Assembly: GCA_009103225.1 (NCBI GenBank)
Contig: RHPI01001567.1
Location: forward strand, 4,864 to 68,863
Length of the DNA stretch: 64,000 nucleotides
DNA from: Chlorokybus atmophyticus
Taxonomy: Eukaryota; Plantae; Mesostigma and Chlorokybus algae
Direction of reading: 5' to 3'
The position numbers and the translations under genes are program-made. Below the pieces are notes generated by a model. That model was not told the origin of the DNA. It made no database searches and was given only the letters and a program-made list of their open reading frames with translations. This document shows, one piece after another, positions 13,386-64,000 of this stretch (position 1 is the stretch's first letter; each line of letters begins with the position of its first letter).

Positions 13386-13450
13386 AAAATTACCTCACAC
13401 ACCAAAGACATAGTCAATATCCCCTTAAACAAGAAAGCCAACCGCTCAAA

Positions 13451-13464: not shown

Positions 13465-13465
13465 C

Positions 13466-17913: not shown

Positions 17914-18248
<335 letters not shown>

Positions 18249-22496: not shown

Positions 22497-25356
22497 AACG
22501 CGGCCACACCGCCGCCCTGTCTCACCATACCGCCAATCACATCAGAGCCCCCGGCCCTCCCAGTCACCGAGCACAGCACGTACTCAATGAACCCGCGGTT
22601 TACTGACTCCACATGGCTTGGCAAGCACGGTGAGCGCTATCGAACTGACGGATCAGGGGCGCGTCGGCTGGCCGCCGGACGGCTCGGCCATTTGTCGCGC
22701 GTCACGCCGCTCGTTACGTCAACCCAGCGTCGATTACGTCACCGGCTCGAGGCCTCTAAACGGGGCACGCTTAAAGTGGCGGGGGCCGCGAGGTGACCCC
22801 CTCGTAGCGCGCGGCACGACCCCGAGCCGTCCCCCCCGCCCTGAGGTGATAAACGGGTAGGGTTCCGACGGATAGGCTGAGCAACGCGCGGACGCGTGCG
22901 ATTCATGAATAAGATGTGAGCTTGAGGCCAAGCTCATTAATAAAAGGGGGAGAATGGGCACGAAGTGGGTGCAAAAATGTACTATTAATAAGCCAACAAG
23001 ACTTAAGGACTCGAATTATAAACCTACTTAGGTTTTTATGGTTGAGTTCGTGAGGCCCCATATGACAGTCAGGTCAGGAGCCATCCATGCATCATTCTTC
23101 TTGAACCCCATCATCACTCCTCCAACACTGCAAGCCAATTGGCAATGAAGACGGAAGTTGGAGTCTGTTGATAAGGTGCAAGAAGAAGCAAGTCAATCTC
23201 CCTGTAGAGCATTCAGTGCTCTATGTTACAACTCTCCCCTATCGTTTCTTCAAGTGAGCCGCTTGCAAAGGCTAGCAGCAGGTTTCCCCAGCATCACATC
23301 TGAGTTGGGCAGATGAGGTAAAGCAGCAGCATGCAAAATCACTAAAACTGCAAGCCAGCACCATCTCGTCATCTGCAATTCTTACCTGCATAGAAGCAGC
23401 AGGCATTGATGTTGATAGTAAGCCCATACAAATAGTGTACATGGTTCCCTGCGTCATAAGCCAGTTGCTTACACTATGTTGTATTAGGGTTATTATGGCA
23501 GAAACCGGCAATACTGTAGAATCTTGTGATGTTTATGGTTTAAGCTATAGAGACCCTCCCAGATTGGGCGCGGCTTTGCATTGAACCCAATGCATTACGT
23601 ACATATATGCTAAAATGACGCATTTATTACAGTATTAAATCCACTATCTCACATTACACTACCATATATACAATGTAAACTATATATTCAAGAATATATA
23701 TACACTAATATATACACTAATATACATATTCAATTGTATCATATCATATACATTTGTATTGTTCCCTTCAAAGGGAACAGTACAGGGGGGGACTCTATCG
23801 TGCAAATACAGTTCCCATCGTGTTTTAACAAGGGGGAGCTGTACAAAAGGGGGACTTTATGGGGTAAATACGGTAGGCCAAACTTTAAACATGCATGATA
23901 AACGAGTTACCCCTCTAATTGCTGTCGATAACTATATAAAACATGGGTACAAAATGGTTAGACATTGCCTACGCCATCAGCAATGTACAACTTGTTCAAG
24001 ACTTTTGAAATCGCCTCTTACCTTTACGTTTTGCTCATATTGCCTTCGCTGTATATCGCACTTAATTAGCATTGACGACGAGCAACTCTGGAAGTCAATT
24101 ACCGAATAGGAAGGAGGAAAGCTTCGTGCTCAGATTTTCCAAGCAAAGGTAGCAAGCCTTTCATAGACGCCTCATTTCTTGCAGATCAAGGACTGGAAGA
24201 ATGCACAGATGATGGGGAGGATGATTAGGAACATAACAGACGTTGCAGTTTCCCATCCTCCCCACCTCAAGTTAACCATTGGGGGTAGTAGTCGATCCTC
24301 CGGCTTGGTAGTGAAACGGTTTCTGAACTTGGCTTAAACTAGAAGAGCAGAAAACAAGAGACAAACATGACAAAGCAACTTCATCAACATGGTCTCCCCT
24401 CTTCTCCCCCTTCAAGCCAACATCAACAGCGCTAGTGCGCCTTCATCTCCTCGTAATTGCCTTGAGATGTTTAGCTATAGCACGGTGATAGAGCGTTCCA
24501 CGCCTCCCCACAACTCGGATCACCCTCTGAGCTCGAAACAGCGTGGGAGCGGCTTCGCTGATAGGTGAGGATAACCCTAGTGTTCGGGTGACTGCTCTCT
24601 CATCTTCCTTCCGACTCTATCGAAATGCATAGTTTGAGGTTGAACGCTTATCTAGCGCCTCTTCTATTCTGTGTGATACTTTACAACAACAGGACATGCT
24701 GCAAGACTGTTGGTTGGACGCTTAGCCGAACAAGGAATCTCCTCACGGCTAAACAAAACAGAGAGAGAAGAAACATTGTGGCTTCATCTACCCAAAAAGT
24801 TTACGGTGAACGAAGAGCTAAAAGTGTTCACAAAACCCTGAGCACGCTCTAAACCTTCGAAAAGCACGCAATTGAAAAGAAAAGAAGAAAAGAAAAGATT
24901 AAAAGAGAAAAGATTAAAAGAAGATGTATACCCTATAATCTTATAATAACATTAATTTTAGATGCGTGCTTTTGGGACTTCTAGAGCGTGCTTACTTTTT
25001 TTAGACATTAAGCTTGCACAACATCATCATCAAAGCTACATGCTTGAGGGCGTCCTCAATCTACATGCTTACTTCGTCGGTAAAGCAAGCTTGGCACAAC
25101 CTTGAAAGCCATAAGACGTAACAAAGTACGCGACTTTTGGGCAAAATAACACGCAATAGTACGCGAACAACAAGCAGTTATTCATATTTCGTTGAAAGTA
25201 CGTGAAATTGTATGTTATTGGGCTGCAGTAGGTCATTTTTGTCAATGACCGCGGATAGCGCAGCAAACGGCCTTTGGTGACGTGCCGCGCGCGCGACCTG
25301 TCACGCGGCGGGTAGGTCGCGGCGACCCGCCTCACCTATTGGCACTGCAAGTAGTA

Positions 25357-28300
25357 GGGTAAGTATGCCTAACTTGGGGCTGTTTGGCGGTCATAAGGTT
25401 ATGGCTTCCGCGGTGTTGTTTTTTTGGCGGCCATGTATATGTATGATGTGTAGATAAAGTTTTTCCCTACACAGCCATATTTTTAAGGGTTTTTTTGGCC
25501 TAGTATAACGTTAGTTGCAGTAGGCCAAAGTTGGGGTGTGAGAGCTGTCAGTCCCAAAAGTCGCGGGCCCTAACTTGGGGACTCGATACAGCCTGCCAAA
25601 GGCTGTCAGCAGACTGCAGCCTGTGCTGAAGGCTGTTCAAGGCAACCTTGCAGCCATTTCGGCATGGCTGCGGCCAGTGGGAGCAGGCTGGGGGGGGGCA
25701 GGCGGACACGCAGGTGATAGCCTTGACATGCAGGCTATTTGGGCTGCAGGCAATGCTTGCCGCCAAGCGACGAGCATTGCCTTTATTGCAAGGTTGCAAG
25801 CAAGGCGGCGAGGTGGGCGGCATGCACAAGGTAGGCAGCATGCATGGGGGACAGGGGTGCATGTGTGTGTATGGTTGTATGTACAGGGTCAGAGCATTGC
25901 TAGCTACCACTAATGCTAGGTGTAGCTACTGCTGGGGTGGTCTTGCGCTTCTGGCGCCAGCGTGCGCCAGCCTCCTTGGCGAGGTGGTTGGTGGTTGGTG
26001 CGGCCGTTGAAGTGACGCTCAGCGACATCCCACAGGGGATCGCCCAGTTGGTTATGGCATAGCATAGGGTTCCACTCATAGCGGAATAAGATCTTAAGGG
26101 CTTCTTTGGCTGTCTGCTCTCTCACATGCCTCTGCTGCCGTGCATCTTGTGCTGCTGCCTGTGCCTCTGCTCTCTCCTCCTTCTCTAGTTCTTGCTGCCG
26201 CTTGGCTGCTGCCTGTGCCTCTGCCTTCTCTTGCCGCTTCTTCTCTTTCTCTTGTTCTTGCTGCTGCTTGGCTGCTGCTGCTGTCTCTTGTGCCTCTGCT
26301 TTTTCTTGTTGCTTCTTCTCCTTCTCCCGCTGTGCTATCATCTTCTTCAGCTGTGCTCTCCTCTTCTTCTCTGCTTGTGCTGCTGCCTTGGCTACTGTAT
26401 CCTCAACTGCTTGGACCTTTTTCAGTGCTGCAGCTTCTTTGCGAGCCTTGGTTGCTGCCACCTTGGCAGCCTTGGCCTCAGCCTTCCTCTGCAGCTCATC
26501 GATCACCTCATCAGCAGTCAACAGGTGAGCAATCTTGATGCTCTTGGCCCTCTTTGCTGGCTGCCCATCTGTGCAGTCTTCTTTGCCATTGTCTTCCTCT
26601 ACTGCCTGCTCATCTCTGACCTCGATTGCCTCCAGCAGGGCAGATAGTCCAGGTGCCGGTGGGGCTGCTTCAACAGTGTGGAAGTACTTGTCGCAGCAGT
26701 GCTTGTCAAGGGGCCACAACCCACAGGCTCTGAACCCTGAGATGATGTTTTGGGGGGACAACGCAATCAGGTAAGGGTTTACCAGCATCTTCAAGAAATG
26801 CTTGCGCTTGAGTGCCTGGTTGTGCTGTCCGTCCTCCCTCTTACGGTACTCCTTCTTGTAGGCTTCTTTAAGTGGGTGGAAACAGCTGACATCCAACACT
26901 TGTAGCCTATGTGTGGTGTGTGGTGGTAGTATGAGGATGTGGAGTCCCTGGTCGAGTGCAAAGCGGATCATCTTTGGGTTGTACCTTGAAACATGCCCGT
27001 TCGTGACTAACAGCGCAGGGTTCTCAGGGCTGACTCCTCCTGGCAGCCATGACACCAGCTTCTCAATCCAGAGCTCAAAGATGTCAGTAGTCATCCATGC
27101 GTTGGCTTGAGCAAAATAGCGGGCCCCGGGGACCTTGAAGGCCTTGACATCAGCGCTGACTCTCTCTCCCTTCATAATCACGAGGGGTGGTGCAGCAAGC
27201 CCAGCTCCAGTAACTGCGCACATCAAGGTGATGTGCTCTCTGCTGCCGCTAGTTGAACATTGTGCATACTTGTTGCCACTGCACAGGCAGACAAGTGAGT
27301 CAGCATGTGCATGAACATGTGCATGCACATCAATCTTAAAGACAATGCATGAATCTCAAAGACAACACTAACAACTCTTACCGTTCGCAGATGATGCGGA
27401 TGTTCCCTGCAGCACTGTCAGGCTCGATGCCAACCTCGTCTGCTGACAGGATCCTCTCTGGCCCAACACCCAGCTTGTGCACAGTCTCAGCCAGCAGATC
27501 AAAGTATTGGTACACAATGTCTGGTGTGAAGGCAACCCTCCGGGACCTGTCTAGAGGCTCAGCCCTTCTACTGACAAGGTTGTGCCTCTTTCGTAGCCCA
27601 TCGAACCACTTCTGCCCAGGTATGCCATTGTTGAACAGCTTTGCGCGCGGGTCTCCCACGAGCCGCTTGCCTGCTTCAACACAAACCTCCCCCCAGGTAA
27701 CACCTCTCCCCCATTTGTTTCGCAGCTTCACCCACTCTGCCAAGTCCTTCTCTTCTTCATCAGTCAACACAGTCGGAGCCCCTGGTGCTCTGCATTGCAT
27801 ACACACTTTGCTCAGCCCCCCACCGACGCAGTGACCAACCCTGACTGCAACACTGAATGCACTGACACGCAGGACTTGCTAACTCACTTGTACACAGGCA
27901 GGTCCTGTTGCTGGGCAACGAATCTGCGCATGGTTGAGTCAGGGATGTCCAGCTCCTTCACTGCGTCACTCACAAGCATGCAGCCTTGGTTGATCGCAAT
28001 GACAGCCCTGCTGATGTCCTCCATCCTCCCCTCATTTGTGCTGTAGTTGCGCTTGCGTTTGTTGGCCTTGGGAGTCTGGGCCTTCACTCTCTTGCCCTGC
28101 CAGCAGCATGTTAGCTTGGGTGGTCTGAGTGGCATATGCCACCGTGATGACAAGCATGCCAAAGCGTGCAAACTACCCACCCGGGCTCAGCTGCGTGGCA
28201 TAGCAGTAGGTGTAGTTGCGTAGTTGTGGTAGTCTTGCCTTGAGCTTTGGGACCTCCTTGCAATGCACAGTCCTCCTTCACACTACTGCCGTGTGCTAAC

Positions 28301-32458: not shown

Positions 32459-34725
32459 TGCCTTCATGATTGGGTTGTGATAGGCATGATTGGCAACTAA
32501 TGGTGCGGCTGTTTGGTCGGGCCTGCCGGCCTGCCGGCATTTGAGGTTCTGCGCATCAAGGCCGTGCTGGGCCATGAGTGGCACCCGCGACTGTCAGACA
32601 GCTACTCGCAACTGCCTCTTGTAGCTGGGCGGCAACTATTAGCCCAAACACTGCTTTGGATCGGCGAGATGTACATCTCGCCCATCAAAAACACATCCCC
32701 ACGTTATGCAATTGCTCACATATATGCGAACAAATGGCAATAATGAGCGTAGTCATGTGACAACAATAAATGAAATGCTGAATGTGGCGGTATATTAGCA
32801 AATATTGCCGCATGTGCATGCAATAGAGACAATATAATGCAAACCATACACGTTAAATTGAAAAACTGTGATCGGATGATTTTTACGCAACCGATAACCG
32901 TTTGATCCTATCCGTTTTCGTATTATACATTTTACATAGCTTTTCGTATTATCGCTAAACACGGTGTAAATAAACGTTCAACAAGCAGAACACAAGAAGT
33001 AACAACTGTGAGTTCTGATGTAAAATCAAGTTTAAAACCGTTCTATTGAATTAGTACCATACACAAAAAGTAGCTAGCGCCGTTACGCTGCAGTGCATCA
33101 ATCGAATGCCTTTCTAAGTCAAGCGGTAACATCGTCAAAACCGCAGTTGCTCAGTACGAGGCACTACCTCATTTAGTGAACAAGCGAAAAGCATCTTTTA
33201 CCGCTTCAGCAACGGCGAACGAGAAACGGCATGTGATGTCGCTCGCATCTTCGGCACAACGCGACAATTTGCCATGGAAACGCGTTTCCCAAACCCCCCA
33301 AAGAATCTTAAACCCATCCTACTAACAGCAACTGCACTATGTCCGTTACAAAGCGACCTATCGTTATCATAAGCGATTTCAATTGGACGGCAAGCAATAC
33401 ATTAGCCGAACTAATTGCACAGTACTCTGCTTTCATGTAATAAAGCATTGATGAGTTGGGAGGCCTTGTGCCACCAGAGTTCAGCTCGGCATTGCCACCA
33501 CTAGGAGGTGGTGGCAATGCCGAGCTGGACATTGGCAGCGCTGCCATCGCCGCTGCTCAATCCTTTATAACCATGATGACCGGCGCATACAGCAACGCAA
33601 ACATCAATGTGCATGTTTTCTTTTATTTACAAGTTTAAGACAGCCGTTCTTTACCTACAATTGTGTTTGCATTGTAAGCACGTGCTTCTTATACATTACT
33701 ATCATGTGTAATCCCCAAAGAGTATGGCAGTTTGCATCAATGCATCAAGCTTAACTAGAAAGACACTTGTCATTTGTGGACTCATTGCAAATGGTTTAAG
33801 TTATGTCAACAACGTCATATAATATTGTGATGCATATGTTAAGATAGCATGGCCAGCAATCAATGTTTGATGGCCTTCCTGTTTGTACATGCTGTATAAC
33901 ATGCGTGTGCGTATGTGTTATCGTATGAACAGCATTATCATGCCCTCAATAACATAGGATTCGGTGGGGAGTTCGATGTGCGCGTATGCTACATATCATG
34001 ATACGCTTTGCGTTAAGGTGCATTACTTTATATGCAACCATTATCACCCCATGCTGATGTGGGGTGCCAACATTATTTGCAAGTGAACCAGCGTGATGAC
34101 ATTAGCCTCCCACAGCCTGCTTTGTTACCGGATGCCTATCTCGAAGTCATATTTGTAAGGCATGTCCTCAGACTGAATGGTTTGTGGGTAGGGTAAATGT
34201 CCCTAACTTGGGGAGATTTTGAGGTTTTAAGGGTGTAGCGGGCGGGGTAGTTGTTATTTGGCGGACATGTATATGTGTTTTGTGTAGCTTAGGTTTTTCC
34301 CTATACAGCCATATTTTTTTGGGATTTTATGACCCATCATAGCGTGAGATACAGCACGCCAAAGTTGGGGTGTGAGGGGCGTCAGTTGAAAAGTCCTCAA
34401 GCCCTAACTTGGGGACTCGAGACAGCTGCCAAAGGGTGTCAGCCTGTGCCAGCCTTTGGTGATGGCTATCACCTTGCACTTCCGCAGCCATTTTGAAGCG
34501 GCTGGGGCCTGCTGTGGCAGGCTAGGGTGGCAGGCGCTTCGCAACCTTGATTGCTGTGATGTGCAGGCCATCCCCTTGCAGGCATTCTTTGCCGCCAAGG
34601 CGTTGGCTTTGGCGGCAAACAATGCTCAGTCTCTGCAAGGTTGCATGCAAGGCGGCACTTGCATGAGGGAGTGGGCGTCCTGCTTGGAGGCGGCATGCAT
34701 GAGGGAGCGGCATGCATAAGGTTCA

Positions 34726-34727
<2 letters not shown>

Positions 34728-34781
<54 letters not shown>
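34728..34781. repeat. (GT)n microsatellite within copy B
   Basis: Seen directly. Confidence 0.95.
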
Positions 34782-34794
<13 letters not shown>

Positions 34795-34843
34795 CAAGGA
34801 ATGAGAGTGAAGCAGCTGTTCCTGTCTACCTAGTCCTAGCTGT

Positions 34844-37049
34844 CTAGGTAAGGGTGCTCAAGTGTCTTGGGCGGTTTGGCCTTGTTCTCCAGCGTGCGCC
34901 CGCCTCCTTGGCCTGTGGGTTGGGGCTAGGATCAACACGCAGGTGGCGCTCGGCGAATGCTTCTGCATAATCCCACAGGGGGTCGCCCAACTGGTTCTCA
35001 CACATTCTTGGGTTCCACTCGTAGCGCATGATAATCTCTGCGGCTTCTCTGGCTGTCCTCTCTCTCTGTTCCAGCTCTGCTCGCCTTGCTTGTTCTTGTG
35101 CTACTTGCTTCTCTGCTGCTTCACGCTTTTCTTCAGCTTGTTCTTCAGCCCTTGCTTGCTTGCGCTGCTCTTTCTCCCTCTCTTTCAGCATCTTCTTGAG
35201 CGCAGATGCCTTCTTTTTGCTGCTGTTTTCTCTGCCCTGGCTGCAGCTTCTTGCTCTGCTTGTGTCTTGCGTTGCTTGGCTGCCTCTTTGCGTGCTTGAA
35301 TTGCTTCAACTTTTGCTGCCTTCTCTGCATCCTGCCTCTCCAGCTCCTCAGCGATCTCTTCAGCAGTCAACAGCTGTGCTGTCGTCACACCCCTCCTTTT
35401 CTTGGCTGGTGCCTCTGTGTTGAGTGTGCTGTCCTCTGGGGCGTTGGGGTTGTTGTTTTCAGTTGCATCTCCTGCCTCTATCGCCTCCAGGAGGCATGAG
35501 AGGCCTGGGGGTGGTGGGGGTGCCTCTGTGTCCGTAAAGTACTTGTCCAATGCATGCTTGTTGAGCGGCCACAATCCACAAGCTCGAAAGCCTGCGATGA
35601 TGTTGGCAGGGGACAGTCCAGTGTAGTAGGGGTTGACGAGCAGCCTGAGGAATTCTTTGCGGTTGAGCTCGAAGTTGTACCTGGTTTCCATCCGCTTCCT
35701 ATACTCCTTCCTGCATGCTTCCTTGAAAGGGTGGAAGCATGAAACGTCCAACACTTGCAGGCGGTGTGTTGTGTGTGGTGGCAAGACGAGGATGTGAAGT
35801 CCCTTGTCTTGTGCATAGCGGATCATGCGGGGGTTGTACCTTGAAACGTGACCATCCACCACTAACAGCGCAGGCTTGGAAGGACTCACCCCTCCAGGAA
35901 ACCACTCCACAACTTTGCGGATCCAGAGCTCAAAGATATCAGTTGTCATCCAAGCGTTCTCCTGCGCGGCGAACCTGGCTCCTGGGACGTCAAAGTCCTT
36001 GGCATCAACAGTAAGCCTCTGTCCTTTGATGATCACAAGAGGAGGTACTGCAAGTCCTGCTCCTGTGACTGCGCGCATCAACGTGATGTGCTCTCTGCTG
36101 CCCGTGGTTGAACATTGTGCCCACTTGGCTCCACTGCATGCAACAGCACAATCAGCATTGCATGCTTGCATATGTATCTAAGTGGATAATGCATGTGTGC
36201 ATACTTATGCGTAAGCAAAGCAACTGTGTACCTTTCGCAGATGATTCTTTGGTTTTGCATGCTAGTGTCTGGCTCTATCCCAACCTCGTCCGCTGATATG
36301 ATACGCTCAGGTCCAACCCCCAGTTTGGTGACAGTCTCGGCCAGAAGCTCAAAGTAGTGGTACACAATGTCCTTGCGCAGGGAGACCCTCCTGGACTTAT
36401 CAAGGGGTTCTGCCTTCCTGCTGGTCAACCCCTTCCTCCTTCTCAAACCAGAAAACCACTTCAGACTAGGTACTCCATTCATGAACAGGCTTGCTCTTTG
36501 ATCACCCACAAGACGCTTGCCTGCCTCGATGCACACCTCCGTTCATGTTACTCCTCTCCCCCACTTATTGCGGAATATCACCCACTCTGCTAAGTCATTC
36601 TCTTCTGCCTCCGTAAAGATGGTGGCAGCACCTGGTCCCCTATTGTGCGTACACTTGTATTACACCCTATTGACTAACACTTCAGCTGGCAGTGCATAAG
36701 AAAGGGGCTTACTTGTAAAGGGAGAGGTCTGATTGAGCCAGGAACCTGCGCATGGTGGTGTCGGGGATGCCAAGATCTTTCACAGCATCACTGACTTGCA
36801 TGCAGCCCTGGTTGATGGAGGAGACAGCCCTCTGAATGTCCTCCATCCGGTCCTGGTATGTGGTGTAGTAACGCTTGCGCTTGTTGGCAGATGGGGTTTT
36901 GGCCTTCACTCGCTTGCCCTGGCCGAGTGCAGCAGAGTGCATCAGCACAAGGATGCAAACGAGGGTGGTCTGAGTGGCAACTGTCACAGTGATGACAAAC
37001 ATGCCAATGCATGTGCAACACCCACCCTTGCAGAGCTGCGAGTCACCAT
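34844..37049 (-). pseudogene. DDE_1 transposase of copy B
   Basis: ATG|gt at 37049, exon 2 from 36918. Intact SADE, VVDGH and QVLD triad, but TGA in place of copy A's Trp (36543-36545) and a 1-nt frameshift in an A run near 35215. Confidence 0.9.
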
Positions 37050-41406: not shown

Positions 41407-41482
<76 letters not shown>

Positions 41483-42521
41483 TCCCTCTGTCTCCCTCTC
41501 TCGCTCCCTCTCTCGCTCTGGTCATGACAAGCGGTGTTACCTGCGCGCGCGTGCATGCGGGCACATGCCTGAAGCCATGCGTGCGCGCACAACAGTACAA
41601 GTAAAGTGTACATGTGCTTGCCTTTCGGTATGAGTTATCTGAGCGCTCGCCAGCAACACGTGTCATGTGCAGGGAGAGGCAGAAGGCAGCTGTCGGTACA
41701 GCACCCCTGGAGTCAAGAACATCACCGTCACCATCATGCAGCACGGCTTGAGCACCTCCGGCACTACAAGCATTAGTGTTGTGGAGTACAAGCAAGCATG
41801 CAGCCCGTACGTCAAAGATGCCCGCATAGCACGCATTGTCTTGTCAGCTCTGACGCCATGGTTGTTTTGCTACGTGCATTAGAGCGGAGTATCCCCCCAA
41901 TGGAAGAGCCGTTGGGCAGCGGGGCTGTCCCCAAGTTTACTGGGAATCGGGATACTATGCGTGCAACTACCCCGCCCACATCAAGCCCTCCACGCGACTG
42001 TGGGTGGCGTTCGCAAGCAGCGCTGCGGAAGATGCGGCCGTCATCCGACGCTTGTACGGCAACCGCACTATGATACAGGCCCTGCGCAAGTACAACAGCA
42101 AAGACCAGGTTGGCTGAGATGAGAGGTGTTATGGTGTGTTATGGTTGCAACATTTTGTCAATCCAGTGTAACGAGAGGCTGGTTATCTTGCAGGCGAATC
42201 TGTTTGCAAGCGAGGCTGCTGCGGCACTGCTCAACGCCTTAACACTGGCGTACCCGCAGTGCCCTCTCGCTGTTAAGCTCAAATTCCGCCATGCTCTGTA
42301 TCGCGGCGTCTCCTCGACAGAGGGTGAGTCTCTCTCTCTCTCTCCCTCTCCCTCTCCCTCTCGCTCTCTCGCTCCCCCGTGCGTGAGGGAAGTTGACTCA
42401 ACCAAACATCCTTGATGGGTTACTTATCGCTGTGGCACTATGCAGCGCGCACAGTCTACAACACCTTTCTCTACCACAACAACGCTATTCAAGGATGCAC
42501 CCTGCCTTTTTGTCAAGATAA
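38386..42521 (+). CDS. Secreted protein with nidogen-like (NIDO) domain and PKD/Ig-like modules; at least 11 exons, 3' end unresolved
   Basis: Hydrophobic signal peptide, LYPFG..GD, GDD..S..I.LP, YLNLNG, VAAFWTDL, ATWFN, NTFQAVI, QAGFN.GDG, SNVG..G.W.F, then WDLNNDGAFDDATG and YSTPGVKNITVT. Checked GT-AG junctions stay in phase; two introns contain N gaps. Confidence 0.85.
38795..39175. other. Assembly gap (N run)
   Basis: Further gaps at 40970-41406 and 52391-52577; single n at 17913, 45743 and 54151. Confidence 0.99.
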
Positions 42522-43764: not shown

Positions 43765-44732
43765 CCTTCAGAGGCGGCAGCGCCGGCGTGTGGAGCTTTA
43801 GGGTCTTCCACCTGGGCTCGATGAAAGACTGTCCGGGCCACCAGCCCGGACAGAGTCATGTGCCCAACAGCGACAGGCCCCATACCTCGCCACTCGCATA
43901 CAATCTGGGGCTGAAGCGTATCGGGCCCGTGCCGGGCATATACATCACCGCATACACGAATGCGAACTTCAAGCGGCGTCTGGTCGCCTTCACGCAGCTG
44001 CTTGAGGACAAACACATCAGGGAGATACGCAAGGGCTGGCTTCTCGATGCTGGTACGCAGCATGGTTAACACTTGGTCATCCTTTTTAGCACCCCATGGC
44101 CCACGCATGCGCACACACGGCCACACAGACAGGTGCCTGCGGCCAAGTTGAAGGAGTACCTGCGAGTTCGTGGCCTGCAGTACAAGGAGGTCAGCGCAGT
44201 GTTCAGCAACTTGCACGTGTTTGAACAATGCACAGCATGGCACGGTGATCTGTTGGTGTGATGGTGTTTGCACAACTGGTACAACTGCGGCGCATGCTTG
44301 GCTGGCAGGAGTTGAACAAAGTAGCCAAGACGATGTCCGTGTCGGACTTGGCGAGATGGAACACTGTCACCAGGTTTGCGTGGCGTCGGAGCAGGGACGA
44401 CTTGGTGGCGTTCTTGGAAGCCAACCCTGGCATGGCTGAGAGCACAAGCTCCTGGAAAGACACGTGAGCGCAGCCCCCCCGGGCTCAGAAGCAACCAAAC
44501 GGTTGCTCAGGCAGGCTCGCACCTGCACGTACACCTGCATACGCATATGTATACCCACAAGTGCAGCTTTTTTCACAGGCACGCCATCTGCTTCAAGCGC
44601 ATGTCAAGTCAACCCACAACTGTTTGTTCCACAGATGGTTTTGGTGCAGCAGCGACTTCGTGCCCATATTTTGTGGCTTATGTTTGCCTGGAAACTGGTT
44701 GAACTTGAACGCTTGGAGCCCAGTAATACCAA
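43765..44732 (+). CDS. Run of small spliced exons of unknown product; possibly the 3' continuation of the NIDO gene
   Basis: Exons ~43765-44052, ~44133-44189, ~44309-44463 and ~44634-44732 have in-phase GT-AG boundaries and no stops. One has a SAP-like V.AAKLKEYLRVRGL stretch. Confidence 0.5.
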
Positions 44733-44835
44733 GTAAGCAACTTGCGCGCATCGCCACATTGCCTTGTGCCATGCCCCACCCCACCCCCCACGCACCCACA
44801 CCTGCACGCGCACGCGCAAGCATACACATACACGC

Positions 44836-45742
<907 letters not shown>

Positions 45743-46285
45743 NACACAAGCAAGAAACTGCCTTCTACACGGGCAAAGTGTATCCTGAGCAAAGATCTGG
45801 TGGCTCAACTCCACTGAAGACAGCGCTGGTGCATCGCGTTGCACAACCTTGCAAAGCAACCCAGTTAATGGACTCAAGAAGGAAACGAACAGTGCCCAAG
45901 CAGCATGCTCTCTGCACTGGCTGGCAACAGTATCACACTAGTGATAACAAATCAGTGAAAATCTGTCGGTGATGATTGTGACAATTGCACTCACATTCGT
46001 GTATTATAGCGGCCCCTATAGGCTACTGCAGCGGTAGAGACGATGTGATGTCCTTGTTGAAATATATGCCACCTGTCTAGTGCCATGACTGTCTCCAAAT
46101 CCTATGCAGCAAACAGAGCTTGCTAACACAAGAACTCAATCCAGCACTTGCAACATGTCATGCACAAACGACCATCCAGGTCCACGAGCATACCATATGG
46201 CAACCGCACTGGCGCTCATTATTCAGCAATCTATTGATGTTCTATGTAACCAACCCGTCCTAAGCTATCGTTGCATAATTACAGT

Positions 46286-48840
46286 TTACGTCTGACACAA
46301 GCGTGCATCTTTGGGGTTCAGCAACCGTACGGTGTCTTCAGTTGTCCTCCAGCCTTGAGTGGTGGCAGCCTTGAGGAAGGCAGGGAACCGCAGGCGCGTG
46401 TCAACATGGCCAGCCACAATGGCGTCCTGCACTTCCGCTGGAAGGTAACCTCTGTGGTGGTGCCAAGAGTGCTGAGATGTGCTTGAAATTGAAGCCGCCG
46501 GCGCAGACGCCGCGTGCATGTGTGTCGCGGAACCCTTGGAGAACTGTGATGTATGCATCCGGCGGAGTTTTTGCAAGTGGTGCAAAGTGGCATGGCCCTG
46601 CGTGCAGCGCAGTGTTGAGTAACTTGCATGAGACCATACAAGACCATACATATGCGGGCATGCATGCGGCCTCTTACGCAATCACAACAACCTAAGTCTA
46701 GCAAGCTCGGCTTGAGTTTAGTCGCAACAACCACCTAACAATGAATACAGAGAGCTGGATGAATACAACTTGCCTGGAATGCTGCGCGCAGTATATCTTC
46801 TGGTGACGCGTTATCTTTCAACACAACAAACACTTTCCTCTTGTCCAGGCGGTATGTTACAAGGTACGACTCGTCCCTGAAGGTCTGCGCTGCCATCTTG
46901 AAGGCCTCCGCTGTTGGGAAGGCTTCGCTCACCCTGGCACCCAACTCCATCGGCCGATGCCGCGCCCACGGGAACACGCACAGAGCCTCGCTCTTATTCG
47001 CATCCTTGGGAGGCATTACTTCCCCTGAGAGACAGTCAATCTCAAACCATGATCATCATCACAATGCCATTCACTGCTGCATTGTTGGTGTCACAAACAA
47101 TGCGTACCATCTTCAAGGTAGCGGTTGGCGACGACTTCAAGGCGCGAGCGGTTGAGTGTGGGTATTTGCACGCTTCTGACCTCGCGATAGGAGCCAAATA
47201 TGTAGCCCGCGGCAAGGGTCCCGTAAGTGGCCCAGAGTGCAGATGAGTGGCGCCGCGACAGGCAGATGCCAATGCCCGTCCCCACCAGATCAGCCAGGTT
47301 GCTCACACTCTCGCCCTTCGCCGTGATGTCACCCAGGTTCTCGCTGCGTGCAAACGCCTTGTATATCGGTGCCCGTGTGGACGACGCTGTCACAGCAGCC
47401 AGATTCTGCAATGCATGATGCGAGTCCTTCAGTTGTGGCTGATTGCTGTTGTTGTGGCAATTTCATATTGCAACAACTCACCAAGAGCTGATTGTGTTTG
47501 CCAGCAGCACAACACTACTACACATTGATGCTGTATGCACACACCCTTCACACCTGCACAATCATGCACAAGTGCACGCACATGCAATGCGCGTTCTGCA
47601 TACAGTGTACCTTGGCTAGGTTTGCACAGCATGCGAGCGGTAGGAAGTATCGCGGGAAGAAGGCTGTGGCGAGCTCGACGGATGCGCCGCCCATCATGAG
47701 GACATTGCCAGCGAAGCGGAACTGCTTGAGCTCGCAGTCAAACTTCTTCCCTTGGCGGGCGAACAGCATCTTGCCGAGACGGCCGGCACCGTCCTTAATG
47801 GCCCAGTTAACAGCCACAGCCGCAGCTGCGGGAGCGTGGCCGCGGTTTGGAGCACCAACAGCAGACAAAAGCGCCCGCGTCGTGAACACGCTCAAAGCCC
47901 CTCCAAATAAATACTGCACAGGAAACGACACACAAACATCAGAGATCGGTCAAGCGCGAACAGTCACATCCTGAAATGCAGCTGGCTGTTTAAGCTGATG
48001 ATCCAACATACTCAGCACTTGATCAAATATCAAAGCAGTATAGTGCACACTGATTTAGTTGCGTTGTGCTACACCACAATTCACTGCTAGAATGCACGGT
48101 ACTGAGCCATGGTTGCTGCTTTTACTGTTGATTTTGACTACTTCACAGTGCACCAGTCTCATTGTCTCATCTGCGTTGTTTTGCACCTGCACAGCCCTCC
48201 ATCGCATGTAGGGCGCAAAGTCCGGTGAGACGGTGGCCGGGTAGCCGTCTGGCAGGATCCATGAGCAGCACCATGCCTTCATCGACTGTACCAGGCGCCG
48301 GGATCTGTCCGTAACCACCTCAACGACCTCAAAATCAGCCTCGCTTCGACTTCGACTTCTACTGCTACTTAGACTCTTACTGCTATTCCTATTTACAAGC
48401 CCTTTTCTATGCCCATGCCCGCCCTTCCGCCTGCCACTCTCCCCCCTGGCGAAGTACATGTGGCACCGCCCATTGCTGATCTCGAAGCAGAGAGGCTGAT
48501 CTTCCTGTGCTTCGTCTCCTCCTCGTCCTTCCCCTGCTCCTGCTACGGCTCCTCTGCCTGCTGACCGTCCGCTGGTCTGGGCCGGCGGACTGCTGTGCAA
48601 TGCATCCAGAGTTTGCTCGTGCAGTGCTGATGTAGATGATGATGCCGCCGTAGGCGCCACGCGAGAGTTGCTGCTGTTCCGGTGCTGCAGCCGAAGCTGG
48701 AGAGGTGAGCAGCCGGGCCTCCATGCCGCTTGTGGCGGCATAGAAGACGAGCCTGAGGAGGAAGAGGAGGCCGACGATGACGAGGAGGAGGCGGACGACG
48801 AGGCAGCCGGCGCCGAGCTCTTGCAATTGGAGAACGCCAT
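46286..48840 (-). CDS. RUS6: ROOT UVB SENSITIVE family (DUF647) protein, RUS6-like, 5 exons, 605 aa
   Basis: Exons 48840-48187, 47913-47611, 47405-47108, 47024-46774 and 46597-46286 total 1818 nt in frame. LPDGYP..V..D..Y..WR, NWAIKDGAGRLGKMLFARQGKKFD, ENLGDITAKGE and FPW..RP..LGAR match recalled plant RUS6. Confidence 0.92.
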
Positions 48841-51800
48841 CTGCGTGCAATGCTTTGAAATCACAACAGCCTCCTTTACCGAGGACTTGACTCACTACCC
48901 TCCTATCTCCGCCCCTGCGCTACGCTTACACCAACCATCCCACCGCCGCCGCCGTTGCCGCCAGATTGCTCCACCTGTACCAGGTTGTTCGTCCCACCTT
49001 TGACATCTCACTTGGCTCCGATATCACTACACTACAAAATGTCGGGTGTGCTCAGATGGTACCTGCTGGACGCGAAGAAGGCGATATCATGCGGTTGATG
49101 GTGGATTTCCGGCATAGTACAGTGTGAGGTGCCACGCTGGAGTGGAAACCGCGCGCGATTTGAACGGAGCGGCGGACGGCGCACTGGCCAATTGGGCGGC
49201 CCATGGTACGCGCCACCACGTCAGCGCCAGCGGTGGACGGGATGATAGAGGAAAAGTGGACGGCAGAGGCTCGCGGACCGCCATGCGAACGTCGCATGAT
49301 GCGGCGTCACGGACCGTGACATGGTCACGGTCACATAACACCTTGCTACAACATACACTTAACCTTACTTGCCTGTACTTGACTCTATACAAGTTAGTTA
49401 TCATTTCGCCCTATGCTGCTCGCAGCAGCCTGGTCGCTCCTATGAAAGAAGAAGTAGACTGCTGTGAAACTAATTAATGAAGTTAATAATCATGCGTTAG
49501 TGTAAGTGGTGTTGCGGCGTTCAACAGCTAGTTAATACGATGACAGCATCTTTAAGTTTATGATTTACAGTGTAATATATAGGGAGCTACTGTACTTCAT
49601 GACACGGTTAGGCTCCAGTGCTATAACACTATGCATAGCTTGATTAGTAAGCTATGTGTTATGCATTTGCTTGTGTGCAACTTGTGTGATTAAAGCACGA
49701 GCGTGAAACTCAAAGCAACCGCTCGCGATGTTTATCTGACCGACCTTTGATACAATAAGAACACCTTATCACACACCGCATTATAAGTTATGCTGCATGG
49801 AACACGCACAACCGAGCACACGCAATAAATGCATACCCTTTCGATTGCATCGCCACCGCACACACGCAATGCACTACACTCGCTCGATACGGATGCAACT
49901 TAAACAGCGTGCACAGCACCGGCCACAAAATATTAATGTGCATTGTGTTAACACGAGGGGCACCTTCAGGGGTCAATGTTGGCGTCCAAAGCTATAGTCA
50001 ACACTTGTCGTGTAACAGTCGAGGCCAATAATCATGTTTTCAGGATCTTTTTCAGCCTTATTTGTCGAACATCATGTTTTCACGACTTTTGGTGAATATT
50101 GGCGAGTTGTGTGCGAGTCTGTCGCAGATATTGACCGGGGCTAAGGACCAGTCTGGAAGCCGCCAGAAAACGGAGGGCCAGTCGAGAAGGGCCCGACCAG
50201 ATTTCAGGAACGGCCTGGCGCCAAATAGTATAAGTTGGTCATACGGGCACCAAATGAAGAGTTCTTTGGTGTGTAGGAAAGGTCTGGGAGGGTATTACAC
50301 GATTGTGCAAGTTTGATTTATTAGCTTCTAATTCCGTCTAGCGCAAGAATCGTTCAGACAGTAGCATGTGCAGACCGGTAGGTATAAAAGAGACAGTTCA
50401 TTATGTGCAATACAACCTTTATCGCCCTGGTTTCTTGTGTGCAAGCTTGTTGGTAGTTAGCAGTGATTGCTAGCGTGTGTCCACTAGTGTGAGCTTGCTT
50501 GTATGACGATGCAAGGCGCTACACAAGTTGGTGTGTAGCTTCGAGCGCATGCGCGTGGGCACGCAAGTGGCGGGGCGCGTGTGTGCGTGGCAGAGGGGGC
50601 AAGGTTCTGGTGTGAATACCGTGTCTTGGTGAGAGGGTTGTTGATTGGATTGTTGATTGCCAACTCACAGGTAGCAAGGCACAAGCACCGTCACAGGTCG
50701 TGCCTTCATGAATTCACTGTTTGTAGCATCTAGATACCTTGCGCAACTTATAGGCGTCGATGAGGGCCCCATCTACAATTAGTGTTACTAATTGGATTCT
50801 GCAACAACGACCGCCGAGGCGCGTGCAACACTTAATATCGACGATGACGAGCAATACAATATCGACCGCAACATGTCATAATGCTATAGTGGATCGCCCA
50901 CATAAATGCCGTCCATGGCAACAACCGTACTGTTTAATAATAAAAAGTTGTCGTATATATACGACACGAGTATATTTGATAAAAGGGGTCAACTTGATCT
51001 TCTTCCCTTTGCGGCTGCGCCACTTTTCTGGTAGCTCGTCCCATGCATACACTGTAAAGCCTCCCAACTTGGAGACCAGCCACTCGAGCTGCGCACACAA
51101 TCGAGCAGGCAACTCATTTGGAATGCGCAATTTGTTTCTTGGTTCAACACAATCATTAAGGATGTTATCAAATCGCAGGTGCCCACACCTGCGATTTGAT
51201 AACATCCTTAATCTGAATGAACTCCCAACGTTGCGGCTCCTTTGAAGCATTGGGGAAGTAGATTCTAATATGATGGTACTTCATGCGTTTCTCTGTAATG
51301 GTATTACACACTTTCGTTGGATGTTCAAGCTGCTTGACAACATGCAAGCAATGGGCTATTGCAGAGACGCACTCATATCACGTGAAGGCTCGGGACTATG
51401 AGCACGCTGAAGCTTTGTGTTGGGTATATATAATTGCACACTGTGCGGTCATTTACATGTAAATTCTCATGGCATGCAGACATTTGTCCCAACTCTTGGC
51501 TACAGCATCCGCTATAGCACAAAGCTGCACTATGTGAGTGAGCGTTACGGTACGCGTACCATACGGCTCACTCACATAGTCTTTTGCTACAATGGAGCAA
51601 ATGGTAGAAGGCCAAGATGTTTGCGTGGGAATGTTAAAATTTATGCCATAACTTAAAATGCGGCGTACATCAATTCAGCTTGTCTTTTGCATATAAACAG
51701 GCGCTCCAGGGCTTTAAACGACTCCAGTTTCACAAGGTCCAAGTCCGAGAAGGTTCTAGATGCGGACTCGGGTTTGGAGACTTATACGAGCTGTCAAATA

Positions 51801-59257: not shown

Positions 59258-62200
59258 ATGGGCGCGACGGCAATGCAGCATCAGTTTAACATGCATGTTG
59301 GCCTGTTGAATCCCGACATGTCCATTGGGGCAGTGGCGCATGATGTGCCCATGGCTCAAGAGCTCCGTGACGAGTCTGCCATCGAGGGTGGCGGGGAGAG
59401 TGCAGCCAATACCACCTTGTCAGCCCCCATGGCTTCCCCTACTCCATGCAGCCCACGGGCCATTGAGGTAAGTCGCTGTCTTTCATGCTCGTGCCTTGGT
59501 AACAATGCGTCAGGCACTGCATAAGCTTATATTCATCCTTTGCAACATTGTGAGCCATCTTATCCTGGGTCCTGTATACAGCCCCCCTTGCTGCATGCAC
59601 AAGTGGTCTCACCTGCAGCTCCTGCTCCCCTCCCAGCCAGAGCGCAACCACCTTCCGCGGCACCAGTCCTTCGTGCACTGCCATCTCCTCCACGAGCAGC
59701 ACCGGTGATTGCGGGGCAACAATCCTTCTTGCCGCCACCGGCGAGACCACAGCACAATGCAACAACCGATGTGGCTTCTGCACCTACCTTACCCCACCCG
59801 CTGCAAGTTGAAGCCGGCAGTCTGCCCCAAACTCAGGTACTTTATCAGTCACTGTGACTCTTGCCGTCCACAGTTGGACACACCATGTGAGTGCTGTATG
59901 CGCATGCAGCAGGGGTCACCACCTGCCAGCGAGTCATCAGAGGAGCTGGCCGCAACCCGCATACGGCCATCAGTCATGCTAGGTGGCCAGCTCGCCTCAT
60001 GGGACCACTTCAATGCGCCAACGGATGGTAATTGCTTCTACCATTGTGTATTTCGCGCCAGGCCATCCATAGCGCAAAGTGTCCTGGATGATCACAAGTG
60101 CCCCAGCTCGAGCAGATTTTGGGCCATGCTGGACACCATGGACGACGACGGCAGGGGGCACACTCTCCGCAAAATCACCGCCAAGGCTGTCGATGCAGGC
60201 GTGGCGAGCAGAATCCTAGACTTCTGCAGAGCCACTGGTGCCGCGGGAGAGATGGCGCAGTATTACGACAAACTGCCTGCGACCATGTTGGCTGATATCA
60301 ACTGCAACATTGACCTAGCCATGGCCAAGGTGCGACAGATCGTGCGGAGAAAAGATGTGTACGTCGAGCACCTGCAGATGACCATGTTTGCCAACAAGCT
60401 GGGCTTGTTGATTGGCTGCGTGACCGTTCAGCGCGAGCATGGGGAGTGGGTGCCACGGCCCGGCAGCGCAGTTTGGGTTGGAAATAAAGAAGCCCCCAAC
60501 TCAGTCCTGGTGGTGGGCAACACTGCTCCTGATGAGCCAGAAGCACACTTTTGGCTCCTCAAGCCTGCAAGCACCGAACAGTGGTCGTGGCCTATGCATG
60601 AAGTGCCACCGGAGGTAACACACCTGATCGGAGAGTGGCGGAATGGCGTTGCCAATTCCCCGCTACCACCGGCTGTGACCCAGAGTGCTGCGCCAACGCC
60701 TCAGGCCTCGCCTTCGTGTGCTAGGCAAGAAGTAGCCGAGTGTTCTGCACATCCTGCCTCCCCTCAACCACAGCCACATGCTCGCAATCCCAATTCAGCA
60801 CCCTCCCTTCCTGCCGCGGAGACTCACTTGCCACCGCACTCTGACCATCCGGAGGCATCTCCATCAAGAAGCAGCTGTAGCTCGCCCTCTCCCTCTAAGC
60901 TTGCCACATTGATCCCAGCCTGTCTTGTTGGTAAAGAGATTGATCGAGGTGTCCTGAAAGCTGCGCTGAAAGACAAAGGCTTCATGCTCGACCTCATGAA
61001 GCAACATGAGGTCGTGGAGGAACGGGAGGCAACCAACAAGCGCAAGGCTGTGGAGCAAGAAGATAACGCCTTACCTCCTCTGAGTGACAGTGCCACGGAG
61101 AGCGCCTGCCAGGATGTGCAGGGTGACAAAAAAAAAAAGAAGAAGGTTGTTGGAACAAAGGACGCTGACAGGACCAAAAAAGGAAAGGTGAGGCATCGTT
61201 ACAACATTAGAAGAAGCACAGCGCCTTGAAGCCTCACTGGGGCTGACTGTGTGTCCTGAGTAGGCACAGGCGGGTTTACAGCGTCAAGTGGCTGCTCAGC
61301 ATCGTCCAGAGAGACAGCCGGTGCGGCACGAGCTGCCTAAGCTCAAAGCACCGACGCGCAGACGCTTTGGGGGGCTGACTCGTAGTGCAAAGGAGTTGAT
61401 CACCCTACAGTACGCCCAAGACGCGCTGCATCACCGCATGCGGCATGCCTCGAGGTGGGTGACGAAAGTTTGCAATAAGTGGGAGCAAACGCGGAGAATG
61501 CGGTCTAAACAGACCTCTGGGGATTGGCCGTGGTTGGAACCCATACACGATATGGCCATCCGTAGTACGTTGTTGCCCCTCGCCGTCCTCGATATGATGG
61601 TGTTGTTGCTGCCGCAGCACCCCGGCAATGTGCAAGAGCTATCTGCGGAGCAGAACTTCGACCTGCTGCAGCAGATGTACCTGTCGATGTCGACTAATGC
61701 GGGTCGAGATGTGTGCCACTACCTGAGCAAACATACTGGGTGGCAAGTAAAACCATTCGAGCTGTACTTGGCATGCTTTGGCTGGCAGTGGCTGTATGTC
61801 ATACGGCACGTCGAGCTGATTCTGTGGAAGCTCGAAGAAAATGACGATGCGGGGGAGTACACGAGTGACGACAGCCATGTCGAGGGCCTGGATGAACGCA
61901 TGCTGGACGAGACCACCAAGACCAGCAGGTGGTGTATGGCGGCAGATGGGCGTCAGGTGATCGAGCAGGCAGTGGAGCGTTATGCTGCGCCATTCAGATG
62001 GGAGTCGCTACGCCTGCGACGCGATAACAGAGTTTGGTGGCAGAGGCAGCTTGCACACCCGCGTGCACCATGTGTGCTGATTTGTCGCATTGAAGAGCCA
62101 CCCCCCCCAGCGGATGGGGAGACGCCCTGTTGCAAGAAAGCGATGTGCCATGTCTGCATCATAGCACATCAGAAGACTGTGGCAAATAAATCAAAGAATC

Positions 62201-62298
62201 TACAAGCGTGTCCATTCTGCAAGCAACCTCACCCGTTTTGGTCGCCACGCCTGATGCAAGACGCCAACGTGTCGGCGGTGATTTGGCCCCCGCCTTGA
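59258..62298 (+). CDS. Intact 4-exon gene (~918 aa): Pro-rich N-terminus, OTU-like cysteine protease, basic NLS-like run, C-terminal RING-like zinc finger
   Basis: Exons 59258-59467, 59582-59836, 59913-61187 and 61282-62298 are all phase 0 with GT-AG and no stops. DGNCFYHCV (Cys 60033) and EAHFWLL (His 60546); CVLIC..PCC..MCHVC..CPFC. Confidence 0.8.
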
Positions 62299-62781
62299 TG
62301 CCAATTGTGCATGTATTGTAGTTTTGTGTTGGCTTCCTGTGAACCATGTAGGTACATGTATAGTTGCAGCATGGTGCATGGTGCACCAGAGATCTGCTGT
62401 TGTTAGAAGCATTGGCTGTACATGTGTATGATGACTGCCCGGCGCATGAGTCAGTGCATGGCTTGCATACCTCGCTGGTTTAGAGCGTGGTTGACAGCAA
62501 CAAACTCGGACAGCGCTCTGGGTTCCATGGCATGACAGCACAGTATTACTCTACGATCGTGGTAGTATGCGAGTATCCTTGTACTGTAGTACCATTAACA
62601 GATAGAGTACCATTCATGTTGATGTAGTACCATGCATGGTACTGCAATAGCGTATAAGGTACAGTCGTGCTTCACTTGAAGTTTGACCCATTTAGGGTTC
62701 GTAAGCTGGCAACCCTAAATTGATGCCCATACCCTAAAGTCTCGCTCAGTTTGTGGGCAGCCGTGCCGATTCCTATTTTGC

Positions 62782-64000
62782 ATGATGTCGGCGGCAGCAG
62801 TTGAATCACCCTCACCTAGGAGACCATGCTTGGTGTGCCCACAATGCAATGCGTACGTATGTGCCAATGGCCGTAGGCAGCAAATGCGAGCACACTTGAC
62901 CGAATGCCAGCGAGTGCAGACAGTGTGCCACGGTTTTAGTGCTGCTTGCTGGCATCACACCACACACAATGTCGACGTGTTTGGCTGCCGCCTCGGCCAA
63001 GTGCTGTGCAAGGAACCCGAGTTTTTCCATTGCGTGCAGTGCGTGTGCGAATCGTGCTCGCGCTCATGCTTCGAGTGGCGAGGGGAACCCATGCGCTTCT
63101 TCACATGGACAACACCGGGACATGTGGTTAGTGGACAGGTGGTGGATGCTGTGGAGGTAATCCACAAGAGTGGACCGCGACATATCACTGCATGTTATGT
63201 TGGGCGTATGCTTATTTCATGCACGTTGAAGCTGTTGTCGCATTCAGAGCAGTCTTGCACGGTGTGGGCGTGGGCAGTTCCATCCCCTGGCCGCTGTAGA
63301 GGAGGCAGACCATCGACCGTTGGACAGCGCACTGCATCGGCTGCGGAACGCAGTTAAGTTGGGATGCGAGCAGCTGATCGGTGTGAGTGTCATGGTGCAT
63401 TGGCCGCTGGATGGGGAATGGTATGCGGGCGTTGTGGAATCATTCAAGCAAGCGTCAGGTCAGCATCGCTTCGTGGCGTGCGAGATTGAGGACGCATCAT
63501 ATATGCATGGTGCAATGGAAAATGTCTTTGCAGGGCAGCACCGTATAGTATTCGATGACGGTGATCGACCACAAACCATCAACTTCAAAGGGCACAACAT
63601 ATTCGCGTACACATCATTTGACAACGTGGTCCCTGGCCAGCACCACGGCCAGCCTTGACCACATACACGCCATTTGACAACAAGCTGGGACGCACACGCA
63701 GACCAAGGGCACTCGACCTATTCTGCGGCGGTGGCGGTGCCAGTGTCGGTCTATACCACGCAGGCTTTGACGTGACCGGGATGGACATAAGTCCCTCCTC
63801 TGAGTACCCGCTGCCCTTCATACACCGCGATGTATGCACCCTGAGTGCAGGAGAGCTGAGCGAGTACGAGCTCATCTGGGCCAGTCCACCATGCCAGGCC
63901 TATTCAGGTGCTATCCCGGCACCTCAACGGGCGGCACATGGCACATCCTGGAGACACCAGGATATGATACCGCTCGTCCGACGTCTGCTGCTTGCAAGCC
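62782..64000 (+). CDS. Zinc-finger/Cys-rich, Tudor and C5 cytosine DNA methyltransferase fusion gene, truncated by the window end
   Basis: Exons 62782-63156, 63248-63458, 63534-63606 and 63702->64000 splice in frame. Tudor LIGVSVMVHWPLDGEWYAGVV..SGQHRIVFDDGD; MTase motif I LDLFCGGGG, GMDI, and motif IV WASPPCQAYS (Cys 63892-63894). Confidence 0.88.

Follow-up and report, generated by a model that had tools for sequence, protein, structure and literature searches.

A candidate gene joining an RDM15-type Tudor domain to a giant-virus-type cytosine methylase in Chlorokybus atmophyticus

Eukaryotes have repeatedly acquired foreign DNA methylases. Lineage-specific orphan DNA methyltransferases (DNMTs), laterally acquired and often from giant viruses, are documented in many eukaryotes; these viral orphans have so far been reported as bare catalytic domains, generally without companion domains, and several of them are silent (PMC12344493). 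The DNMTs of giant endogenous viral elements (GEVEs) in Amoebidium are a further virus-derived eukaryotic case (PMC11244446). Fusion of a methylase to a reader domain is known from DNMT3 (PWWP/ADD), CMT (chromodomain), ChloroDNMT (PWWP) and DNMT5b (Tudor, MBD) (PMC9998398, PMC12344493), and the bdelloid N4C methylase has been cited as a eukaryotic case as well (PMC12344493). Here we describe a locus in a stretch of 64,000 nt of Chlorokybus atmophyticus DNA (contig RHPI01001567.1; "the window" hereafter denotes this whole stretch), the final 1.2 kb of which hold a Cys-rich region, a Tudor domain and the beginning of a short C5 cytosine methylase. In our view, held with a confidence that is no better than even, the locus represents the 5' portion of a nuclear gene in a transposon-rich eukaryote, with a short C5 methylase of the phage/giant-virus family as its catalytic module. 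A giant virus is the most likely source of this module.

The three pieces lie on the same strand and in order, and we infer that they are joined into one protein by three short GT-AG introns, according to the following layout:

62782..63156, plus strand: proposed exon 1, Cys/His-rich, 125 codons, starting ATGATG
63157..63247, plus strand: proposed intron 1, 91 nt, GTAATC...TTCAG
63248..63458, plus strand: proposed exon 2, a linker and then, from about 63368, the N-terminal half of the Tudor domain, which carries W and Y of the cage (the alignment to 7de9_A begins at EQLIG)
63459..63533, plus strand: proposed intron 2, 75 nt, GTCAGC...TTGCAG, in frame and stop-free
63534..63606, plus strand: proposed exon 3, the C-terminal half of the Tudor domain, IVFDDGD with cage residue F and two Asp (alignment to 7de9_A)
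63607..63701, plus strand: proposed intron 3, 95 nt, GTACAC...CGCAG
63702..64000, plus strand: proposed exon 4, the N-terminal third of a short C5 methylase, cut by the end of the window

All three proposed introns start with GT and end with AG, as a first, sequence-only reading of this DNA had stated, all four proposed exons are stop-free, and removal of the introns leaves a single open frame of 319 codons that reaches the end of the window. It is probable that Tudor and methylase are, or once were, one reading frame, while the chances that the gene is currently spliced and intact seem to us about evenly balanced.

The methylase portion is open over 99 codons in translation (63703-63999, plus strand) and carries the C5 motifs that had been noticed there. 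Motif I, FCGGGG at 63721-63738, has the F.G.G pattern of S-adenosylmethionine binding and aligns to PF00145 and to M.HaeIII, and motif IV, PPCQ at 63886-63897, has its catalytic Cys codon at 63892-63894; S61, P62 and C64 are invariant in the family alignment. The PF00145 profile (DNA_methylase) is matched over its positions 3-77 with E=2.9e-5 and 24.1 bits (cut-off 22), from the N-terminal third alone, and the NCBIfam dcm model scores 22.2 bits against a full-length cut-off of 100.65, a shortfall that is expected because the sequence is a fragment. A phmmer search against 1.84 billion representatives returned 3244 matches at E<=1e-3 and 994 at E<=1e-10 (best 2.8e-34). Nearly all of these relatives are about 200-260 aa long, typically about 215 aa, and the same length range applies to most of the top 150 representatives; identity to the short phage and bacterial methylases is 43-58%, and none of the representatives exceeds 58%. 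With tblastn against phage genomes, 316 records were found at 43-47% identity (E ~1e-18), of which 216 cover >=80% of the query; they come mainly from Mycobacterium, Streptomyces, Arthrobacter and Paenibacillus phages and are annotated as DNA methyltransferase. These phage and phmmer matches show that the proposed assignment to a short phage/bacterial family of orphan C5 methylases was correct. The same reading had placed the enzyme outside DNMT1/CMT, DNMT3/DRM and DNMT2, which agrees with the PDB sequence search: at E<=1 it contains no DNMT1, 2, 3, 5, CMT or DRM, only M.HaeIII (weakly) and a prophage enzyme.

The nearest relatives within this family allow the origin to be narrowed. A phage/bacterial-style origin had been proposed; the family is indeed phage/bacterial, but the closest sequences form two clades on giant-virus-like contigs, which we call MBD-type and P0116-type, and these also give the best BLAST scores for the window methylase. 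The close relatives are without exception short enzymes from phages, viruses or environmental samples. Motif IV is followed in the window by an extended linker, whose signature IP..R...W.H..IP lies at about 63907-63975. In a regular-expression test this signature was found in the window, in 9/9 MBD-type and 19/20 P0116-type proteins, and in 1/354 of the other fetched family members; the sole outside carrier, P0016, is itself MBD-type and sits on a virus-like contig. In an LG+G4 tree of 90 rows the window falls in an 11-row clade with all MBD-type rows (support 99/95), and P0103 and P0116 are sister to this MBD-type/window group (99/91). Support is lower in an LG+C20 analysis of 72 rows, in which the strict clade is not rejected by an approximately unbiased test (p=0.37). 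The trees, which rest on 96-99 alignment columns, thus favour this placement without fixing it. The MBD-type clade comprises P0005, P0009, P0016 and P0151-P0155. Every relative of the signature group for which the context was fetched lies on a dense, intron-less, virus-like contig, as the following loci illustrate:

L086: MBD-type methylase P0155 at 2874-3716; neighbours D5 primase-helicase and a PLOD-type glycosyltransferase
L002: MBD-type methylase P0009 at 2028-3050
L090: MBD-type methylase P0016 at 10001-10843; neighbours topoisomerase II, ribonucleotide reductase small subunit and U-box
L001: MBD-type methylase P0005 at 447-1616
L089: neighbours RNA polymerase Rpb1 and a second methylase
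L003: neighbours topoisomerase II and YqaJ
L088: neighbour mRNA cap N7-methylase

Since the nearest relatives are found on giant-virus-like contigs, the likely donor is a giant virus, and judging from these alignments the two giant-virus-type clades are the best candidate donor lineage for the window methylase.

The viral relatives show a further feature of their own. In C5 methylases the region between motifs VIII and IX is the position of the target-recognition domain, and in the MBD-type proteins an MBD sits between motif VIII (RHRLFE) and motifs IX/X (IPPAY). The MBD profile (PF01429) is matched above the Pfam cut-off in P0005, P0009 and P0152. A structural model of P0009 (predicted local distance difference test score, pLDDT, 84.2) has a confident Rossmann-type core and, at residues 205-242, a beta-sheet-plus-helix module between low-confidence linkers; its best structural matches are DNMT1, M.HaeIII, the prophage CP-933R methylase and DNMT3. 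This arrangement suggests that reading of mCpG is part of target choice in the MBD-type viral methylases. A full-text literature search on giant viruses/Nucleocytoviricota with MBDs found no description of an MBD-in-methylase architecture, and short giant-virus methylases with an MBD at the target-recognition position deserve description in their own right. We also observed that the same in-frame TGA interrupts an MBD-type gene in two separate metagenome samples (L003:6001-7296 and L004:1064-2359). The gene is otherwise colinear with P0009, and a nonsense mutation, readthrough or recoding are all possible; an intron was rejected as the cause in L003, where the interruption is the single in-frame TGA.

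The Tudor domain was recognized through its spliced form. The segment joined at 63458/63534, from EQLIG to DDGDRP, matches 7de9_A, the Tudor domain of Arabidopsis RDM15/PDS5C, with E=9.5e-10 and 41 bits, at 44% identity and without gaps over 43 residues that span the splice junction. The 53BP1 Tudors are also matched in the PDB search (E ~5e-4 to 8e-3), and the Pfam Tudor models give sub-threshold matches (PTM_DIR17_Tudor, E=1e-4, 22.5 bits against a cut-off of 27.2). RDM15/PDS5C is a reader of H3K4me1 (PDB 7DE9; PMC8184781), in which the aromatic cage consists of W616, Y623 and Y641, the two free protons of mono-methyl-lysine are bound by D643 and D645, and H3R2 is bound by E647 and Q654 (PMC8184781). 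The first five of these positions read W, Y, F, D and D in the window (VHWPLDGEWY...IVFDDGD), so that F stands for Y641 while the other four residues, both Asp included, are unchanged, with Pro in place of Glu647; the Tudor domain with its aromatic set had been called correctly. Going by these residues, the domain seems able to read methyl-lysine and may prefer low methylation states, with a differing H3R2 contact. An AlphaFold single-sequence model of the unspliced Tudor ORF (open reading frame) had a pLDDT of 58.8 and was uninterpretable. A tandem Tudor, with the end of exon 1 and the start of exon 2 as a degenerate first copy, was considered and rejected, as 1612 of 5000 shuffles scored as high; against the PDB this candidate gave nothing below E=0.17. 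No Tudor relatives were found on viral contigs by a method that finds only near-identical peptides.

Of the 125 residues of the first exon, 15 are Cys and 6 are His, some of them arranged in the pattern C-x2-C-x2-C-x4-C...H-x3-C, and the composition of the exon (GC 0.57, GC at third codon positions 0.61) is like that of other coding sequence in the window. The zinc fingers that had been proposed here are borne out as Cys/His spacing, but no curated zinc-finger model or solved structure is matched: exon 1 has no Pfam match at E<=10 except an irrelevant one at 0.2, and no PDB match at E<=10. "Zinc finger" is therefore a residue pattern and not a family assignment. No relatives of exon 1 were found in IMG/VR viral contigs by the search that finds only near-identical peptides. 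A Tudor-methylase product that lacks exon 1 could begin at an ATG at 63320.

If the locus is read as one gene, a mechanism can be proposed. In the most parsimonious account, a phage-type methylase would have entered giant viruses and gained an MBD there, and would then have passed from a giant virus to the host, a direction that we presume. The Tudor domain would dock the enzyme on nucleosomes with a low methyl-lysine state, H3K4me1-like, and the methylase would write 5-methylcytosine (5mC) near the docking site, probably at CpG. Beyond the end of the window, motif VI (ENV), motif VIII (RHRLFE) and motif X (IPPAY) are predicted to follow, together with an insert at the target-recognition position, which in one sister clade is an MBD; the methylase may thus carry an MBD in place of a target-recognition domain. 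The strongest version of this proposal, in which the product is an expressed, active and chromatin-guided de novo cytosine methylase that combines a giant-virus methylase with an RDM15-type Tudor reading low H3K4 methylation, we consider distinctly unlikely. Were it true, the enzyme would link the deposition of 5mC directly with H3K4me1-like chromatin and could spread the mark from mCpG already in place, and this wiring would be independent of DNMT1, DNMT3 and CMT.

Intron 1 has a GC content of 0.46 against 0.57-0.60 in its flanking exons and 0.47 in intergenic sequence, and intron 2 has 0.49, so both fall to the intergenic level, as real introns should. No homology evidence bears on the junction of intron 1. 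That of intron 2 is validated, because the spliced Tudor aligns to RDM15 without a gap across it. A retained intron 2 would put 25 residues into the beta2-beta3 loop of the Tudor domain, and the unspliced Tudor segment, with these 25 codons kept, has zero Pfam matches. The junctions of intron 2 show an in-register repeat of 11/14 positions (p ~0.03); the idea that intron 2 arose by tandem duplication of exon 3 was rejected, since the local alignment is not significant and this weak junction repeat is the sole signal. Splice signals were compared with two control introns, inferred from the order of Pfam profile matches in a host gene of the same window:

47094-48891, minus strand: RUS/UVB_sens (PF04884) host gene with at least three exons, used as splice-signal control

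The control introns run from 48186/48192 to 47914 (273-279 nt, donor GTGCA) and from 47610 to 47406 (205 nt, donor GTACAC). Their acceptors end in GCAG, and the proposed intron 3 has exactly the same donor hexamer, GTACAC, as the 205-nt control.

Several observations weigh against an intact, spliced gene of this origin. The splicing of the pieces into one mRNA is deduced from the sequence alone. An in-frame route from GT to AG is weak evidence when taken by itself: exon 3 can be connected with the methylase frame by 13 GT/GC-AG solutions. Two in-frame alternatives for intron 3, 63626-63684 (59 nt) and 63629-63684 (56 nt), both keep family-like residues. Intron 3 has an exon-like GC content of 0.57, and the methylase-frame codons just 5' of its proposed acceptor read GRTRRP, resembling the G.RRRP N-termini of the viral relatives; an old intron is not expected to retain such family-like codons. 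The control introns measure 205 and about 275 nt against 75-95 nt for those proposed. Exon 1 has no homologue and is linked to the rest only by the predicted intron 1. On the side of the methylase, the window holds motifs I-IV only and ends at 64000, about 10 residues before the ENV position in relatives, and so stops before motif VI and ahead of any MBD-insert position and of the downstream frame. No orthologue or close relative was found in the 1.84 billion representatives (best 58% identity), nor did the JGI metagenomes yield a relative that extends the gene past 64000 (best 64% over 44 residues and 57% over about 70). In the LG+C20 tree of 72 rows, support for the clade with the MBD-type proteins drops to 64/84. 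Finally, a Pfam scan of the 60 longest ORFs of the window found no giant-virus hallmark genes (the only matches are UVB_sens_prot, NIDO and Tc5 HTH), for which reason the route of acquisition is one that we infer.

The exon-like composition of intron 3, together with a direct repeat within it, makes a decaying relic a serious rival, which we regard as possible though on the unlikely side. In this alternative a virus-derived methylase, perhaps once part of a continuous Tudor-methylase ORF, was broken by insertions or duplications and is now unexpressed, and the "introns", at least intron 3, are lesions with chance GT...AG ends. The repeat is 18 nt long (63608-63625 and 63664-63681, 16/18 identical; 1/2000 shuffles is as good) and flanks an insert of 38 nt. 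Its copies are spaced 56 nt apart, the very offset by which the Tudor and methylase frames differ, and deletion of exactly one 56-nt period restores a continuous ORF from Tudor to methylase, which indicates that the two were once a single frame that was later interrupted. We read this interruption as now either spliced out or lethal to the gene, and the repeat may be the footprint of an insertion or of a recent intron gain. Some routes of recent intron gain also leave a flanking direct repeat, which counts against a lesion as the only explanation. Decay would also fit the GRTRRP codons that persist 5' of the acceptor, the lack of a start codon in the methylase frame, the failure to find an orthologue in the representatives and JGI metagenomes, and the in-frame TGA that breaks the L003/L004 relative itself. 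Published viral orphan DNMTs are often silent; the Pithovirus-like enzyme of A. castellanii Neff is a case in point (PMC12344493). On the other hand, no stop interrupts any of the four exons, the catalytic motifs are preserved, as are the five Tudor residues mapped to ligand contacts (W, Y, F, D, D), GC falls in introns 1 and 2 as it should in real introns, and the splice signals resemble those of the control introns.

A different possibility, which we think very unlikely, is that the locus consists of separate neighbours: a Cys-rich ORF of 191 aa (62782-63357), a small Tudor protein whose start is the ATG at 63320, and a methylase that is either independent or a fragment. Exon 1 left unspliced is indeed a complete ORF of 191 aa that ends at 63357, the ATG at 63320 is present, no homology ties exon 1 to the rest, and an in-frame GT-AG path is easily found by chance. 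However, the methylase frame contains no ATG upstream of motif I, so that as it stands it has no start of its own and is not an independent gene. The unspliced Tudor ORF stops at 63656, 47 nt short of the methylase exon, the Tudor domain matches its family only with 63459-63533 removed, and the restoration of the frame by 56 nt argues that Tudor and methylase were once continuous. That the methylase belongs to a canonical eukaryotic DNMT family known with readers, such as DNMT5b (Tudor), DNMT3 (PWWP) or CMT (chromodomain), is hardly credible, for although a Tudor domain has been reported in some microeukaryote DNMT5b enzymes (PMC9998398), none of the canonical families appears among the PDB matches at E<=1, phages and virus-like contigs supply the best relatives, which are 210-390 aa long, and the clade signature is confined to viral clades.

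The surroundings of the candidate gene are eukaryotic and transposon-rich, with assembly gaps. Directly upstream of it are the following features:

59709-61229, plus strand: long intron-less ORF of 506 codons with a Lys-rich low-complexity tail and no Pfam family
61264-62295, plus strand: long intron-less ORF of 344 codons that ends in a RING-like Cys cluster (Pfam RING, E=1.1 only)
62691..62738, no strand assigned: three telomere/telobox-like ACCCTAAA motifs within 48 nt, 44-91 nt upstream of the first ATG

The first of these ORFs had no homologue among 5.8 billion proteins; its assignment as an OTU protease, suggested by eye from TDGNCFYHC, was rejected for this reason and for the lack of a Pfam match. 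Neither of the two ORFs matches any fetched viral locus, and they were rejected as viral genes; a viral island (GEVE) inside the window was likewise rejected, from the 60-ORF scan. The first two of the three upstream motifs form an inverted pair, TTTAGGGTT/AACCCTAAA. The whole window has six matches to ACCCTAAA against 0.87 expected, a number reached in 0/100 shuffles, and three of the six lie upstream of the gene, where the cluster is a possible promoter element. In every 4-kb bin CpG is depleted (observed/expected 0.55-0.92) and TpG+CpA is in excess (observed/expected 1.27-1.55), a pattern compatible with a CpG-methylating host lineage.

Elsewhere in the window a number of unrelated features were recorded, and no Rfam families were found in it:

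7959-13994, minus strand: Ty3/gypsy long terminal repeat (LTR) retrotransposon with protease, reverse transcriptase, RNase H and integrase zinc-binding (H2C2) domain matches; its LTRs of about 540 nt are 97% identical, which points to a fairly recent insertion
25354-28200 and 34188-37045, minus strand: two diverged copies of a pogo/Tc5-like DDE_1 transposon, 71-82% identical and about 8.85 kb apart
17907-17986 and 41407-41486: inverted repeat arms of 80 nt, 96% complementary and 23.4 kb apart; the second arm adjoins an assembly gap ending at 41406, and a large element or an assembly artefact is possible
44500-45900: 1.4 kb of strongly C/T-rich sequence (C 607, T 555, A 129, G 109), with several frames on both strands open across most of the stretch
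18993-19487: tandem repeat with a period of 146 nt, seen as three overlapping 203-nt copies of 87% identity

Set beside the described systems, the candidate gene combines elements that are each familiar. The orphan C5 methylases of actinophages and Paenibacillus phages (about 215-230 aa) share FCG.GG, AGFDV.G.D, YP.F and ASPPCQ with the window, in the same order and with 43-47% identity over 99 residues, but they are single-domain and intron-less, lack the IP..R...W.H..IP linker, and none has an N-terminal reader. The giant-virus-type methylases of both clades share the signature that follows motif IV and have an insert at the target-recognition position; they start about 20-30 residues before motif I, without a Tudor domain or a Cys-rich region. 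The eukaryotic orphan DNMTs resemble the window gene in lying outside DNMT1/2/3/5/6 and in having viral relatives, whereas the window gene has a Tudor domain immediately upstream, in a splice-compatible arrangement, and the 60-ORF scan showed no viral island around it. Its best label is a virus-derived "orphan DNMT", an already described kind, with a probable reader fusion.

In RDM15 the Tudor domain lies at the C-terminus of a PDS5-like protein whose role is to recruit RNA-directed DNA methylation, and no methylase is fused to it. The residues for H3K4me1 specificity that the window keeps offer a concrete, testable hypothesis for the site of action of the enzyme. The novelty that the sequence-only reading had claimed for the architecture has held within the range of the searches: a precomputed Pfam Tudor domain is found in 0/240 of the relatives listed, and orphan DNMTs are described as generally free of companion domains (PMC12344493). 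What appears to be new is the position of an RDM15-type Tudor upstream of a short C5 methylase of giant-virus type, with predicted host-style introns.

The reader-fused DNMTs and the bdelloid N4C methylase follow the same principle as that proposed here, a reader of histone marks tethering a DNA methylase, but the DNMTs belong to other catalytic families and the bdelloid enzyme, which reportedly carries a chromodomain, methylates at N4 and came from bacteria. None of these named enzymes pairs an RDM15-type Tudor with the short phage/giant-virus C5 family. If our account is true, a foreign enzyme has been wired into host chromatin, in parallel to the bdelloid N4C methylase but with 5mC as the mark and with a different reader.

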